Shown here: piece after piece, positions 7,856 to 17,598 of the stretch | Numbering within the stretch: position 1 is the stretch's first letter | Layout: each line of letters starts with the position of its first letter | Assembly (NCBI GenBank): GCA_964199315.1 | Contig: OZ116699.1 | Coordinates: 33,666,001-33,730,000, forward strand | DNA from: Orbicella franksi | Lineage: Eukaryota | Length of the DNA: 64,000 nt | Direction: 5' to 3' | Translations under genes and position numbers: made by a program | The notes under the pieces: generated by a model | What the model saw: the letters and a program-made list of their open reading frames with translations, nothing else | What the model was told of the DNA's origin: nothing | Database searches by the model: none

Positions 7856-10800
7856 TCATTCAGTATCACCTCCTATCTCTCCGTCTTCTTTCTCTTCATG
7901 GAATGGCTTTTGATTGACGTTGTTCTTTTCCTTTTCCTCCCCCTCCGCCTCGTCTCCGTCCTTGTCCCCCTCAGTGGAAACTGATTCGAAAGCTACTTTC
8001 GTGTGCCCGACAATGATGGACGATGACAGCAATTCCTTCGGCACATTTCCCGGGGATTTCATGCGCAGATAGCGAGTGTGTTGAATCTCATCTACTGAAT
8101 GAGTCTTCTTCTCTTTTTGCGACGGAAATCGGTCTCTGCCCGCGACGTCATCGTCATCATCGCTGCTCCAAAAACACAGTTCCTCATTCTCCAGTCTTGG
8201 GAAGTCTCCCTCATCTTTCACAAGCTCCTCGCCTTCAGGCAGTTCAGCTTTGAGGGAAGACTCAATGAGCCACTCCTTTCCGATTTCCAAGGAAATTTGT
8301 TGCTTTTCTGTGGGCCTTGGTGAAACACTGTGATGGTTAAGTGATTCTGCCCGCGGAGATAACTCCTTTGCAGTTTGATCCCTCGTCAAACTGTTAACCC
8401 TTTTTCGGTATCTTTCTGCCCCTTCATCTTTGGATAGATTTGGAAGCGAGCCTCGAGCCAGTAGTTTAGGCAAGTGGAATAGATCTTCTTGAGAAGTTTG
8501 GGCCTGCTCGGTTACGATAGGCTGAAAACCCCGCAATCTTCTGAACTGAGGTGAAGGTGGTGCTCGCGGCGAAAGCCTTCCTTTATCAACATCCTGAAAT
8601 ATGTTTATAAAGAACGGGAAATTAGTTCAAATGATCTGAACTATACCATGGCAAAACAGGTTGCTTTTAAATGTCTGTTTTTTCATATAATGTAAAACCA
8701 TCTGATAGGACGGCTAACGCGAATTTTTCAAGTTGATCACTTGCTCATTTATCATTATTCTTTATTCTCCAAAGCTATGACTGGATTATAATATTACACA
8801 AAAATTCCTCTCTTGAAATGCCAAAGTAAAAATATCATTTCTGGAAAAAAAAAATAAGAAAACGTACAGCGCTATGTAAAAGCTGGAGGAAATTATTTTG
8901 AGTTTAATGTATTTCTAAACTTAAACAAAAAGGTCACAACATCTTATTGTTTAATGGTTGCGGAGAGCTGAGGTCGGCGCGTGACAACGTTAGAAACAAC
9001 CATTCACCCGAACGTCAATGGTTAACATGCTCGTTGTAACTGGTCAGCATTTGCAGTGTAATACCAGCTATTTAGTTATGACGTCACTCGAAATATTTCT
9101 CTCAGTTTGATAGGATAACCAAAATACAAAAAGAAAGTGTTTACATAAGAAAAGAGGATTGGTTTGGTACACCAACAAGGTCGCGGTGTCATTGTTTTGG
9201 AACACCAATACGGCTGCCGTGAGGTCATGTGGAAATGCAGTTTGCGCTTTAGATATTATTTGAACGTAATATTAAGCATTATTATGACTATATGAGTCAC
9301 TATTGCTACAGATTTTGAGTTTAGTCATTGAAGTATCGTCTGGTCTTGTCTCTTTCAGATGTATGTGCAAAACGGATTAAGCGCCCCTTCGCTAATGAGC
9401 GCACACTATACAAAAAACTAAATTAGTGCAGCGGAGACGAAATTGAATCATTTCGGTATAATTAATATAACAGTTCATACAGGCGATGTAGAGATGAAGA
9501 GCTAAAAATAATTCAGCACTATGAAACAGTGGAAGCTACTGGCGTTAAGGAACGAATACATAATGATGTTCTTATAAAACACATTACCGTTTACTAGTAT
9601 TAAAACAATTTACAGATAGCCGACCTTCAGAGAAAATGAACAATGCTTCTGGCTTTGTTGTACGGTACAGTAGAAACATTCTATTTTAACAATGAAACAA
9701 TAGAAATCAAGGCATGGGATGTTACAGAAAGTATTCAATGTGCAAACTTAACAACGAAACATGTCAGTTTACGTCTCTTGTCTGATCTGTGTTTGTTTTA
9801 ATCGATAATCACAATGAAGAAATTATAAGAACCTTAAAATATTTTCAACGTGTTATCGCAATTTAGCATAAGTTCATGCGACTTGTGGATGAAAATTTTC
9901 TCTCTGGTACCATGCGGTAATTTTGAATTGCGCCAGGCAATTTCAAGTACATGTGTTGAAACCTTCAGTCAAAGACAATTCATTTATTGCGGATTAAAAT
10001 TAACACCTCGCAGTTTTAAAGGACGTCCTTCGCCGGCTGACATAGCGAAGGGCCAAACTATTAGCAGAGTAATACCCGACATCGTTAATACAGGGTAGAT
10101 CCAGGACCTAAAATTCGCGCTATTGAAACAACTTAACCGCGGTCGACATCTAATCAACTTCTGGAACCCACACATTGTTTTCCTCGCATTCCTCGCTCTC
10201 TCTTCAACAGGCTTTGAATAATAAAACCAAAACCCTCTTTCGCGGCCATGATTCCCGTCTAAACGAACTTACCTCGAAGTCGACGGGCGATGTTTTCGCC
10301 CGTAGTCGCGCACCTTGTTTTGCAGTTGGCGTCGAAAACGATCGTTCCAAAGCTATCTTCGAATTTGTCCAACCAACATGAACAAAGTTCACTGGAGTGT
10401 CCAGCGTGTTAGCACGTCGTCTTTCTATACGCAGCGAGCAGGGCAAGGACCGTGTGCCTTTGTCAGGGTCTAGTGTATTTGAACTGCGCATTTGAGACAA
10501 AATTGGCGAAGGTGGTGCTGGAAGTCTAACTCCTGGTGAGCAAAGTGTCTGTTGAGTCGCTAGCCTGGTCTTGAAGTCGTTTCTTCCCCCGTCATTTGGT
10601 GACGCGAGACAAGCAGTTCGCAAATGTTCATCGATCTCTTGGCCATCCAAGGGTTCATTCCCATCCAGGGAAGTGGATAAATTTTTGTCAGAATCATTGC
10701 TTTTCTGGCGTTGATAAAATTTACTCTTTTGGTTACTTGAAGGCTGACTTTGAGGGCGCGCTGAATGTGTTGCCGACGATCCGCCTCGCTCACTTGTTGC

Positions 10801-11100
10801 ATTCTCAGAGAGAGCTCCTTTACAAAACTCAGCAACTGTTTGCTGCATGATGGCGCTGTCAGCTTCCGAGCCGGAACGAGTCCGGCGAATCGACGGAAGC
10901 TTACTCTTCCACAGTTGAAGAAAATCGAGCTTCTGTTTAGTCAGTGAATTCATCAAACTCCTTCGTTCTTTTTGCAAACGCGACAGCCCTTTCTTTAAGT
11001 CTTCGTCGTAGGCTGAATTTATGTTTAAGGCTTTCTTTATGTTTTCGCTGCGCATGGCGTCGTGTTGGGCCAGTTCCTTGAAAGACAATCCGTGAGCCAT
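7856..11100 (-). CDS. Unit A: CCDC190-like coiled-coil/disordered protein, 521 aa
   Basis: Exon 1 complement(10273-11100), from MAHGLSF to ...PVDFE|GTAAGT, phase 0. Exon 2 complement(7856-8593), from TTTCAG|DVDKGRLSP to the stop. N-terminal heptad segment, long S/R/P-rich disordered region and a C-terminal RYLR motif. The family call rests on recalled motif similarity. Confidence 0.72.
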
Positions 11101-11174
11101 ATTCCAAGGAAAGGATGCTTTGAAACTGCGACCGAGATATGATTCGTGTACGCATACAGCCAACATGTACACAA

Positions 11175-11234
11175 GCTCTTGTTTAGGATGCTTGCGTACT
11201 TTTAGCTCTTGTTTAGGATGCTTGCGTACTTTTT
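11175..11234. repeat. Perfect 30-bp tandem duplication just upstream of the unit A start codon
   Basis: GCTCTTGTTTAGGATGCTTGCGTACTTTT(A/T) twice. Confidence 0.9.
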
Positions 11235-11944
11235 ACCTCTACTTTTGTTTCAAGAACAATGGTGAAAAAATCCGTAAATGCATCCTTTGACATGTTTGAG
11301 TGCCTTCATAACAGGGTGAAGTGATTAATTATCAATTGATGTTGCTAGCCTTATTCAGTCCAATTTTATAGTTCAGTCACTCCTGTCACACTGACAATCA
11401 AAAGCTTAGAAGCCCCAAGGGCCCTGTGATTGTTGAAGAAGGAGCAGTCTCTTCGCTTCAAGCTCACGAGGAGTAGTCTTCACTATCTTCCTGGACTGTT
11501 TTGCTACCTTCTCCCGGCTCTCTCAAGGTCATTTATTCATTGATAAAATTTAATTAACAACAATTGATTTGGACATTACGCTCTGCCTTGCTGTCGCTAC
11601 TGAGTCAACTGATGCACCTCGTTTCCTGTCGCTGTAATTTGCTTCTGGGGCAGGCGTCGAAAATGTGAGGCACAGTGATCTTTTATATGTTAAGCTTCTT
11701 AGATTTTCAGTGAAAAATTACTTATTGAATTTATTATTATAATTATTTCAACCCAGGGCTTAACCTTGGGTTTAACTAAGAAAGTATAGAACTTTATAAT
11801 CGTAGAAGTTTCCTATTTGAAAAGCAGTGCACACACTTTCAAGCTTGCAAACTAGAAAACATGATAATTTACAGTGCAGATGCTTGTAGAATGACAATTT
11901 TTATTCGCTTCACTGAACACTTTAATAACATCCAGACAACTCAC

Positions 11945-12805
11945 CTCTCTACCGACCTCAGTTTCCTCGCAGCCCGAACTCATGGAACGAAGTTTATGAC
12001 TCGCTCCAATAAGCTCTGCGAGCACTTCTTTTCGCTTTACGCCTTTTGCCGTGTCCAAACTCTCTGCGCGGCGGCGGTGGGGAATAGGAGAAGACGGTAA
12101 CGACACACTCTTCCGTTCACCTGTGATGCGGTCGAGAGGATTTAAAAATTTCGAAGATTGCTGCTGCCTTTGCAAGAGAGGAGAATGAGGCAGCTGAGTT
12201 CCTAAGGTTGTAAAAGTGACGTGCACCCGAGAGTTCTTAAACAAGCCCATCCCTGGGTGCTCCTCAAATTCGTCATCTACTCCAGCTGCAATTCCACCGA
12301 CAGAGCTCTTTTTATCTGGTAACGAAAGTTGTTGGTCGAGCACCGGTTTTGTTTCGCTGGGTAGAATTGTAACTTGACTTTTTCGTATAATTTGCGGCGA
12401 GTCTGGCGGAGTAATGCATGCTTCAGGGGATATAGCAGGCTGTAAAAGAGGCAAAATTTTCTCTCCTCCGGACTTCGTCAGCAGAAGCTTCTGCGTTTCT
12501 TGAACTATCATGTCATGCGGCACGGACATCCTTTTCTTCGTTAGAAAACTCCTTTCACTAAGCTTATTTAAGTCTGGTAAATCAGCGTTATCTGGAGAAA
12601 CAGCATCTCTCGGCTCCTTTATGTCGTCCGATGAAAAACGAATTTTGGGAAGGGCAGAGATTCTTTCTATAAATTTTAACTTCTTCTCTCTTAGTGACCG
12701 TATAATCCGCTTGCGCTGCCCTTCGATATTTTCTAAATCCTTCTGTAGGTTTCCTTCGAATGTTGTGCTCCGATTGATGGCTTTTTTATATTCTCTACTA
12801 GTCAT
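11945..12805 (-). CDS. Unit B: large coding exon paralogous to unit A exon 1 (287 codons to a phase-0 donor; unspliced ORF continues to 11852)
   Basis: ATG at 12805 with an in-frame stop upstream. Shares KKA(I/L)N...L.K.L..(I/L)...R...SL...KL.F...LP.I and SLP.S....RRRA..LDT with unit A. Strong donor AGAGAG|GTGAGT at 11945/11944. Confidence 0.75.
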
Positions 12806-13372
12806 CTTCCGACTGATGTTTACAATATCTCTACATGACTTCTTCTGCGACGCTTTGAACTTTTCGGTCTATTCACGTGAACTCAACAGCGCCATAAACA
12901 GCCATTACTTGCCGAGTCTTGTCTACCTTTGTTAAATGCACGTCTAATTGGAGGTGTTCTTTTACTAATCTCCACCCAGGTTTGATGGATGAGAATATCA
13001 ATTAGATACTCTTTATTTGATTTACAGAAAAAACTAAGTTAAGTAAGATTCTGTTAAAACTGACAGGCAAATTAATGTGGCTGCACTTGAACCCTTGATT
13101 TCTACTTCACATGTTAACAGACCTCAACAAGTTTTTTCAGGACTAAATCTAAAACATTCAAATAAAACTAGTGCAACCTATTTAACAAAAATTAACGTCA
13201 GAAAGTAGAAGATTAATGCACTAAATTTTTCCTTCCCACTTATGAAATCGTTTAGACTGTTAAGCCATCCTCTCGAAATTAATTTGACTGAAAAATGAAT
13301 GAGTGATTTCGTCTGTTAATAATCACATTAAGCAGCAATTAGCGATAAACGGATTAGTGCTAGGTTGAGAAG

Positions 13373-15918: not shown

Positions 15919-16935
15919 ATGGAGTCCGTGACATTTGTGTACTCTTTGGCCACAGAACAGGAGAAGCAAACAGAAGCACTTAAAAATCAAGAGCAAAATC
16001 AACTCGATAAATACCGCGCTCTAATTCAAAAGCAGATGGAAAAAGAGAGAGCTTTCCTGTCCTATAAGAAAATTGAATTTCTCTCCAGGCAAGAGGCAAA
16101 GTTAGGCGGAAAAATAAGGCCGTTGTCCGCCCGTGTGCGCACGGGGGACCACCTTCCTGAAATAACATCGAAAGCACAGCCGAAAGAGATGGCGCATAAA
16201 AATGGATTACTCGGAACGAGGACTGAAACACGGAATTTAACGCCATTTATTTACCGTCAGAGGACACATTTGGGAATGGTGGTCGCTTCTTCGAAACCGA
16301 GAAGTAACAGAACAAGTCCAGCAGAAGGCAGGAAATCTTGTCTGATCACGTTGACTGGGTCAAATAGCCCTGTTGTAAATTCCAAAATGCATAACCAGAA
16401 GGAAAGAAAAAGTGTTCATTTTAAGAGTGACGGAAAAGCAACGAGATATTTCCCCAAATACAAGAATTCAAAGCCGCTGACAATTAAAGGACCGCAAGAA
16501 ATCGAAATCGAAACTTTAAGGAAACGAAGGTTAACTCTATCAAAATGCGAGAGTCCACTGAATGAATCAACGAGAGCCCAAAAGGAAATGGTCTCCGAGA
16601 ACTGCCGACATCTTAAAGAGAAAGAATCAAAAGACCGGGGCTCTATCGATTGCTCCCGAAAGAGCGATTCACACAGCTTCGGAAAAATCGAGGCAACTGC
16701 AGCTACAAACCTATCCGGAATGAGCGTAAGCTGAGCTGTGGTGGCGCGTCTGATTGGACTGAAAACGAAGTTTAAAAGGCGGCGATTGCATGGCACTTTC
16801 CAGGCGCCCGAGTTAGAAGTGTTGGACCCATCGCTTAAGCATGACAGGAGGTTCGGTCAGGCGAAACCTAATGACCCCTGGAAAGCAGTGAAGGGCTGTA
16901 GATATCTGAGAATTCCGACAAGAAACGATACATAA
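15919..16935 (+). CDS. Unit C: divergent CCDC190-like paralog (315 aa if the 78-nt intron 16726-16803 is spliced)
   Basis: ORF 15919-16734 carries the same L-x-K-x4-[IL]-x10-L-x3-K-[IL]-x-F motif. The same frame resumes after TGA and ends in DPWKAVKGCRYLR. GTAAGC (16726) ... ACTTTCCAG (16803) defines a phase-0 intron that removes the stop. Confidence 0.68.
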
Positions 16936-17598
16936 AATAGCGCTTCGCTATAAGTTCGTTCCCAAAGTTCTTCCTTCCCCTTCGATTCTTGAGAGATTTT
17001 AACAAGCTTTGGAACGAAGTTGTGCTGCCCCCCTGGCCTCTCCCAAGCTTTTCCGTGCCTGAAGGAAAGACTAGTGCACAGGCTTCCGCTACATTTGCCC
17101 ATAAGCCAAGTGCTATCTTAATAAAACACTGGCAATTTTATGCTTTAACAGAAATGTTTATTTATAGAAAATAACAAGAAGTTGACCGAAGGTAAATAAA
17201 GTGGGTCATCCACTCCGAACTTATAATACATAAATATTATCTTACAGAAAATGAACATAACACAAAATACAGTGATGAAACGAAAATTAACAAGATATCA
17301 CTCAAAACTTCTACAGTGGCTATAGCAGTTCAAAGGCAGGATTTTCACTTTATTATCATGGCACAAAAGGTGAATGTTGAATTTGAACTCTTAATGAACA
17401 GAATGTCACCTGAGGTGTCATTGAAAACCCTGAAAACACAGTAGTCTCTAACAAATAGTTTCATAATTTTAAATCATTTACACTAGTTGGATTAATTTGC
17501 AGCTGTTACAGTTGCAAATGGGTTTTGAAACCAATGTCTACATAACTGTAATCATCACAAACTTGAAGTGCATCTAACTTTAAGATGGGATTATTAGA

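Follow-up and report, generated by a model that had tools for sequence, protein, structure and literature searches.

Does a single locus of the coral Orbicella franksi make two proteins by joining either of two large paralogous first exons to one shared terminal exon? The locus lies in a window of 64,000 nucleotides (NCBI GenBank assembly GCA_964199315.1, contig OZ116699.1, positions 33,666,001 to 33,730,000; about 39% GC, with spliced genes, and assigned to a stony coral by matching public runs and by related contigs), and all coordinates below are positions of this window unless a contig is named. A sequence-only reading had proposed that alternative promoters splice either of two tandem exons, here called A and B, onto a common C-terminus encoded by a third exon, here called T. 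It had suggested looking for the RNA junctions 11945->8593 and 10273->8593 and comparing the exon arrangement in other anthozoans. Our own answer is that this is plausible: that B splices onto T, which would make this an alternative-first-exon gene with a shared tail, is a serious possibility to which we give somewhat less than an even chance.

The three exons lie on the minus strand. Exon B (11945 to 12805) runs from an ATG at 12805 to AGA GAG/GTGAGT at 11945 (the slash marks the exon boundary) and has 287 codons, the frame of which is intact in this genome; its donor GTGAGT (11939 to 11944) is in phase 0 after a glutamate. After a gap of 844 nucleotides follows exon A (10273 to 11100), which runs from an ATG at 11100, with a conserved MAHG start, to TTC GAG/GTAAGT at 10273 and has 276 codons; its donor GTAAGT (10267 to 10272) is likewise in phase 0 after a glutamate. 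An intron (8594 to 10272) separates A from T (7856 to 8593), the sole terminal exon, which begins at a phase-0 acceptor (tttcag/GAT at 8593), has no start codon of its own, contains the motif HTRYLRMK and ends after 245 codons with a stop at 7856. The predicted products are thus A-T with 276 + 245 = 521 amino acids and B-T with 287 + 245 = 532 amino acids. When the sequence was read again, the coordinates, the start, donor and acceptor positions, the phases and both protein lengths of the sequence-only reading all held, as did its statement that A and B each close at a glutamate with a strong phase-0 donor.

That A and B are tandem paralogs on the same strand had also been claimed, and this is confirmed at two levels. 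In a pairwise BLASTP comparison the two exons give two short colinear matches with E values of 2e-4 and 5e-4, which looks weak; their sequence identity is only about 22%. Profiles built from the ortholog alignments A1 (A, 17 orthologs) and A2 (B) align with hhalign over 243 colinear columns (probability 98.8%, E 4.5e-17), which is far beyond chance. Common to both exons are an N-terminal coiled-coil signature (KKA.N....L.K.L..LQ..R..L..SL...KL.F) and the motifs KLPxIR and SLPxSPR..RRRAx[ST]. The coiled-coil signature, the motif SLPxSP..RRRAx[ST] and a first exon closing at a phase-0 donor are the hallmarks of the family and are found in A, B and two further paralogs, C and D, which are described below.

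The gene belongs to a coral-specific family of largely disordered coiled-coil proteins that has no name or known function. Pfam searches with A, B, T and 15 orthologs of B gave no relevant match at an E value of 1 or less, and the look-alikes found in the ESM Atlas scored 0.75–0.83, which is the chance range, so that no family was obtained from them; the label "CCDC190-like" is unsupported by any curated family model in these searches. Conserved basic RxRxx[ST] sites occur several times in the family sequence, and its tail, RYLRMKSP...SSSIIVGHTK, is strongly conserved too; on this basis the proteins may act as phospho-regulated scaffolds.

How old is the arrangement? Seven related loci from six coral lineages were compared with the window: L001 and L002, which are contigs of the same assembly and have an A 79% identical to that of the window; L003 (A 53% identical); L004 (41%); L014, a Tara metagenome scaffold (40%); L013, from the annotated genome of Desmophyllum pertusum (GCA_029204205.1); and L021 (GCA_044670265.1). 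Order and orientation are the same in 7/7 of them, with a divergent C followed by B, A and T on one strand, the order in L021 covering B and A only, as that contig stops before T. A maximum-likelihood tree recovers a B clade with supports of 99/100, a C clade with 100/100 and a D clade with 98/99, and is compatible with a single A clade (66/97). Since the B orthologs form one clade, the duplication that gave rise to A and B is older than every sampled lineage. The comparison that the sequence-only reading had suggested thus shows that the order B-A-T recurs and that the duplication predates the lineages sampled.

The splice signals have been kept over the same time. The donor of A reads GAG/GTAAGT in all six loci whose DNA was read, and in 16 of the 17 aligned orthologs of A the protein conservation ends exactly there (..DFE/VS.., with unrelated tails after it); of these orthologs P0019 reads DKS, and the remaining one, P0023, ends before the donor. 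A phase-0 donor closes the homology of B in the window and in 7/7 related loci, as GAG/GTGAGT in the window and L013, GAG/GTAAGT in L001, L002 and L003, GAA/GTGAGG in L004 and GAG/GTGGGT in L021. In L014 exon B is 53 codons longer and ends AAA/GTAAGT, again in phase 0; a loss of the B donor in this locus was considered and discarded, the exon being merely longer with a new phase-0 GTAAGT. The acceptor of T reads yyycag/GAK and has phase 0 wherever a locus extends as far as T, and the donor phases of both B and A fit it in the window as well as in the orthologous loci. Synonymous divergence (dS) between the lineages is saturated (0.7 to >2), which makes it unlikely that the B donor was kept in every lineage by neutral drift. 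At least five orthologs of A have a stop exactly four codons past the donor (EVSxF* or EVSxL*), which is commoner than expected for a neutral intron; this stop may define a short unspliced A protein.

The ratio of nonsynonymous to synonymous divergence (dN/dS) is 0.18–0.42 for B, 0.25–0.38 for A and 0.15–0.66 for T. These ratios indicate that all three exons evolve fast yet are constrained, with B under purifying selection. B is intact in five other lineages (L003, L004, L013, L014 and L021).

Each first exon also has a conserved block in front of it. The one 5' of the B start codon (approximately 12826 to 13070 on the minus strand, or about −20 to −260) was delimited by blastn footprints: the window matches L013 with 66% identity over 257 nucleotides and also matches L021 and L003, and L003 matches L013, as do other pairs. 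We presume it to be the promoter and 5' untranslated region of B. The block 5' of the A start codon (11135 to 11392, minus strand) aligns in L021, L013, L003, L001, L014 and L004 and contains an invariant CTATAAAA at 11364–11370 (TATAAAA, a TATA box), and is presumed to comprise the core promoter and 5' untranslated region of A. The start codons of A and of B are conserved among their orthologs. Within the A block, just 5' of the A start codon, the window carries a tandem duplication of about 31 base pairs (aaagtacgcaagcatcctaaacaagagct, twice, at 11174–11240 on the minus strand), of which L021 has a single copy.

T gives a single match in the whole 497-Mb genome, and the only matches of B in it are B itself and D. 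A scan for the motif [RK]YL[RK] yielded no other exon in any of the B-A intervals, each locus having one credible RYLR exon, which is always T; and when the B-A intervals of distant species were compared by tblastx, no conserved coding block came to light. The statement that there is only one phase-0 terminal exon with this motif therefore stands. The companion statement, that B has no convincing terminal exon of its own, stands as far as a private RYLR exon is concerned and has to be softened in that two weak, short candidates exist.

If B is unspliced, it has a read-through tail (11852 to 11944, minus strand), in which the open reading frame runs for 30 more codons to a TAG at 11852, giving 317 amino acids; the conservation of this tail is limited to near relatives. 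The first of the two short candidates is the 15-residue exon with which the annotation of D. pertusum closes B, described below. The second is a small conserved element of 35 nucleotides in the B-A interval (11479 to 11513, minus strand) that reads cag/GAAGAT, with an AG at 11492–11491 and a stop at 11464–11466. It is a weak candidate for a private mini-exon of B that would encode ED... and, used as a phase-0 acceptor, would add 8–14 residues and a stop. The element is kept in the window, L021 and L013, whereas in L001, the B of which is a pseudogene, it has eroded; the candidate acceptor at 11491 is preceded by a purine-rich stretch and lacks a polypyrimidine tract.

We therefore arrive at the following scheme, in which we infer both splice junctions, above all that of B to T. 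The first coding exon would have been duplicated in tandem before the sampled stony-coral lineages split, A together with T being the core two-exon gene and B an upstream copy of exon 1 that kept its promoter region, ATG, frame and phase-0 donor. B would either never have possessed its own tail exon or have lost it. Transcripts started at B would run through A, and the B donor would then join T, the next acceptor in phase; because exon A has no acceptor, B transcripts reaching T would skip A by default. The result would be B-T (532 amino acids) beside A-T (521 amino acids), produced by alternative promoters and alternative first exons. Both first exons probably also give short unspliced forms that end within the intron, as seen for A, in run X2 only, and in the clade of the window itself B is dispensable and decaying. 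Put generally, two promoter-bearing paralogous first exons would share one tail, kept since before the sampled stony corals diverged and repeatedly reduced to a single promoter by loss of the upstream exon, a proposal that we advance tentatively, our confidence in it lying a little under the halfway mark.

The A-T half of the scheme is well supported as a two-exon gene by sequence conservation and by one annotation. In the 493-amino-acid model of D. pertusum the A donor is connected with exon T, via an inner AG, because the conserved T acceptor is one base out of frame in this long-read assembly. In the D. pertusum locus L013 (MU825397.1:3114118-3135511; B donor at position 10849 and A donor at position 13813 of L013) single-base frame breaks are found in exon A (around positions 13214–13217 of L013) and at the start of exon T (around 16990–17007). 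They are probably long-read indel errors, and owing to them the annotated model starts at a later ATG and uses the inner acceptor.

What do the RNA data say? Runs X1 and X2 (as contigs) and X22 and X24 (as raw reads of polyadenylated RNA) were mapped to the locus. X22 gave 0 reads and X24 gave 7, all on a repeat, so that neither run yielded usable reads. X1 has an even depth of 2–6 over exons, introns and intergenic DNA and looks like genomic DNA. The repeat is a fragment at about 9141–9339 in the A-T intron, where the depth of X1 jumps to 73, where alone reads of X24 fall and where several Logan contigs break. Words of T were found in polyadenylated RNA runs (fractions of its words: X5 0.61, X25 0.52, X6 0.51, X26 0.49 and X3 0.49, X2 not being on this list), from which it follows that T is transcribed.

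The one strong signal comes from X2, a metatranscriptome. Its contigs cover 10110 to 11696 on the minus strand continuously at a depth of about 1700–2850, that is, about 600 nucleotides 5' of the A start codon, exon A and about 165 nucleotides past the A donor, while the depth is zero over T and 7 over B (about 250-fold below A). The A RNA expressed in this sample is thus unspliced: it runs past the A donor and does not contain T, and its translation would extend A by 23 residues before the stop at 10204. Its 5' end, the only one observed, lies upstream of the A TATA box, by at least 330 nucleotides, and its 3' end has no obvious poly(A) signal or tail. The contig end at 11696 coincides with a single-nucleotide-polymorphism bubble at 11697 with single-copy flanks, which rules out a restriction site or a repeat as the origin of this shared end.

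This RNA heads a series of observations that weigh against splicing of B onto T, the others being given here and with the alternatives that follow. Neither of the junctions 11945->8593 and 10273->8593, which the sequence-only reading had suggested looking for, was seen in the contigs of X2 or the DNA-like contigs of X1, the reads of X22 and X24 being unusable. Spliced A-T or B-T proteins were sought in two large protein collections, in which all matches are open-reading-frame calls on genomic-type contigs; in every T-homologous protein T is preceded either by residues that come from the intron (..FQ) or by an internal start, so that these are unspliced genomic calls. An exact scan of metagenome contigs of the Joint Genome Institute for the junction GAG/GATGTYGATAAAGGAAGG gave five matches, none of them related to the locus (chance), and the Logan contigs L005, L006, L007, L019 and L020 are all colinear with the genome and contain no spliced form. 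The unspliced A RNA of X2 suggests that short forms without the tail are a normal output of the family, and it weakens the argument that every first exon must reach the RYLR tail. Finally, P0042, an ortholog of B available as a protein sequence only, reads E-E-R where its near relative L004 reads E/V-R, which suggests that its B donor is mutated. The proposal that alternative promoters splice A or B onto a common C-terminus is thus upheld in its ingredients (duplicated first exons, conserved start codons, upstream blocks, compatible phases and a unique T), but no B-T or A-T junction was found in the mapped contigs or among the protein matches.

Of the alternatives, the one that survives best is that B is a neighbouring gene in its own right, duplicated in tandem only in part and lacking the RYLR tail, whose transcripts end before A, either unspliced with 317 amino acids or in a short private exon, T belonging to A alone. 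We regard this as rather unlikely, though it has to be taken seriously. The annotation of D. pertusum has it this way: B is a separate two-exon gene of 298 amino acids that ends in a 15-residue exon about 500 nucleotides downstream, and A with T is the 493-amino-acid gene mentioned above. These models come from EVidenceModeler, which combined RNA-seq evidence and ab initio models into a consensus (PMC10022433, which names BioProject PRJNA922177 for the RNA-seq data).

A pipeline of this type is unable to share one exon between two neighbouring models. The annotated 15-residue exon has no counterpart in any other lineage compared, just as the B-A interval holds no conserved coding block among distant species. 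An independent B is further favoured by AATAAA/ATTAAA poly(A) signals between B and A (at about 11900, 11733, 11556 and 11535), by the conserved TATA promoter of A standing between the two exons, by analogy with A itself, which in X2 is abundant, unspliced and free of T, and by the cag/GAAGAT element (exon boundary between 11491 and 11490), given its retention in the window, L021 and L013 and its erosion in L001, where B is dead. Against the element speaks the purine-rich tract in front of its acceptor, and against an unspliced B that it leaves the retention of a phase-0 donor in every lineage unexplained.

A further alternative, which we judge improbable, is that B in this genome is a decaying relic, once functional and now neutral, which makes no stable protein and whose open frame will be lost in time. 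In L001 and L002 many stops and frameshifts have made B a pseudogene, next to intact copies of A, T and C. In L006, which is 96.6% identical to the window, codon 258 of B (12032–12034) has changed from CGA to TGA, and the same stop (G>A at 12034 of the plus strand) is the only allele in the contigs of X1 and X2, so that it occurs in 3/3 contigs of near relatives that cover the site; the window itself has the intact CGA. X2 in addition lacks 20 nucleotides of B at 12142–12161, which shifts the frame, P0025 and P0026 are truncated B open reading frames of 191 and 179 amino acids, and the RNA depth of B in X2 is the low value given above. These sequences show that B is dispensable, and it is being lost in related corals. 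In the window, nevertheless, all 287 codons of B are open, the donor fits the consensus and the upstream block is conserved; the dN/dS of this copy against L006 is 0.53, no higher than the 0.65 found for A against L005; and B is intact and constrained in the five other lineages named.

That B, A and T are the three exons of a single gene, or that B is fused to A via a cryptic acceptor 5' of A, as the common strand and 24 open codons upstream of the A start codon might allow, is effectively refuted, because 0/24 of these codons end in AG and there is thus no phase-0 acceptor, because the only nearby AG (11127–11126) has phase 2, in which the frame would close with a stop at 10937, because the MAHG start is invariant in orthologs and the frame upstream of it is not conserved, and because A has its own conserved TATA block.

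Two more members of the family flank the locus. Paralog C (15919 to 16935, plus strand) is transcribed divergently from B; its first part (15919 to 16725) ends AGC/GTAAGC in phase 0 and is followed by an in-frame segment of 78 nucleotides (16726–16803) and then by 43 codons with CRYLRIP up to a stop at 16935. In L001, L003, L013 and L014 this segment contains no stop, and its protein sequence (..VSWAVVARLIGLKMKFKRR..HGTFQ) is strongly conserved; the window has a TGA at 16732–16734 where these others read TGG. Either the segment is spliced out in the window, in the manner of an exitron, or C is truncated there.

Paralog D, the fourth family member, lies on the plus strand about 7.3 kb before the start of the window (G000:C2:33658687-33658878; L017). 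It has an open frame of 291 codons that ends CAC CAG/GTATGT in phase 0 and is syntenic with the D copies of L004 and L014, where D stands convergently beyond T. A terminal exon of D was looked for and not found; an RYLR match at about −886 relative to the window was rejected as chance, as it has no acceptor and no conservation.

How does splicing of B onto T compare with known systems? Alternative first exons are common in animals. Like other genes with alternative promoters and first exons that arose by tandem exon duplication, the locus has two paralogous first exons on the same strand, each with its own ATG and upstream block, with donors of the same phase and one compatible acceptor. It differs in that we infer the use of the second first exon, in that the exons are old and, at about 280 codons, of unusual size, and in that the upstream one is lost in some lineages.

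The sequence-only reading had likened the locus to the clustered protocadherin and UGT1 loci. Formally the layout is the same as in the protocadherin (alpha/gamma) and UGT1A clusters: large paralogous first exons in tandem, with private promoters (presumed here) and a shared downstream coding sequence. For a two-exon case the analogy is however overstated, there being two variable exons and one constant exon of an unrelated protein family, the variable ones being only about 22% identical and not a recently expanding array. Protocadherins have a conserved promoter element and an insulator-based promoter choice; no sign of such a system came up here, where no search was aimed at one.

B also resembles a partial tandem gene duplicate, that is, a 3'-truncated paralog beside its parent, in that it holds only the 5' exon, lies 844 nucleotides upstream of A and is a separate gene in the D. 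pertusum annotation. Such 3'-truncated copies usually decay quickly, whereas in B the reading frame, the donor and the promoter block have survived in lineages separated by dS >1. The A RNA of X2, which ignores the donor and stops about 165 nucleotides into the intron and would give a protein without the tail, is reminiscent of short isoforms made by intronic polyadenylation or intron retention; it differs from them in that neither a poly(A) tail nor a canonical signal was seen at its end and in that it is known from contigs of one run.

If B does splice onto T, the locus would be an ordinary gene with alternative promoters and alternative first exons in an unnamed coral family, and no general principle would change. 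Coral annotations would then mis-model the locus, the D. pertusum record perhaps included, because standard gene finders are unable to assign one exon to two adjacent models. It would also be a clean, datable case of an alternative first exon that arose when an exon was duplicated and that some lineages have since lost. In this annotation trap, and in an exon duplication that can be dated and was followed by loss, would lie the main interest of the locus.

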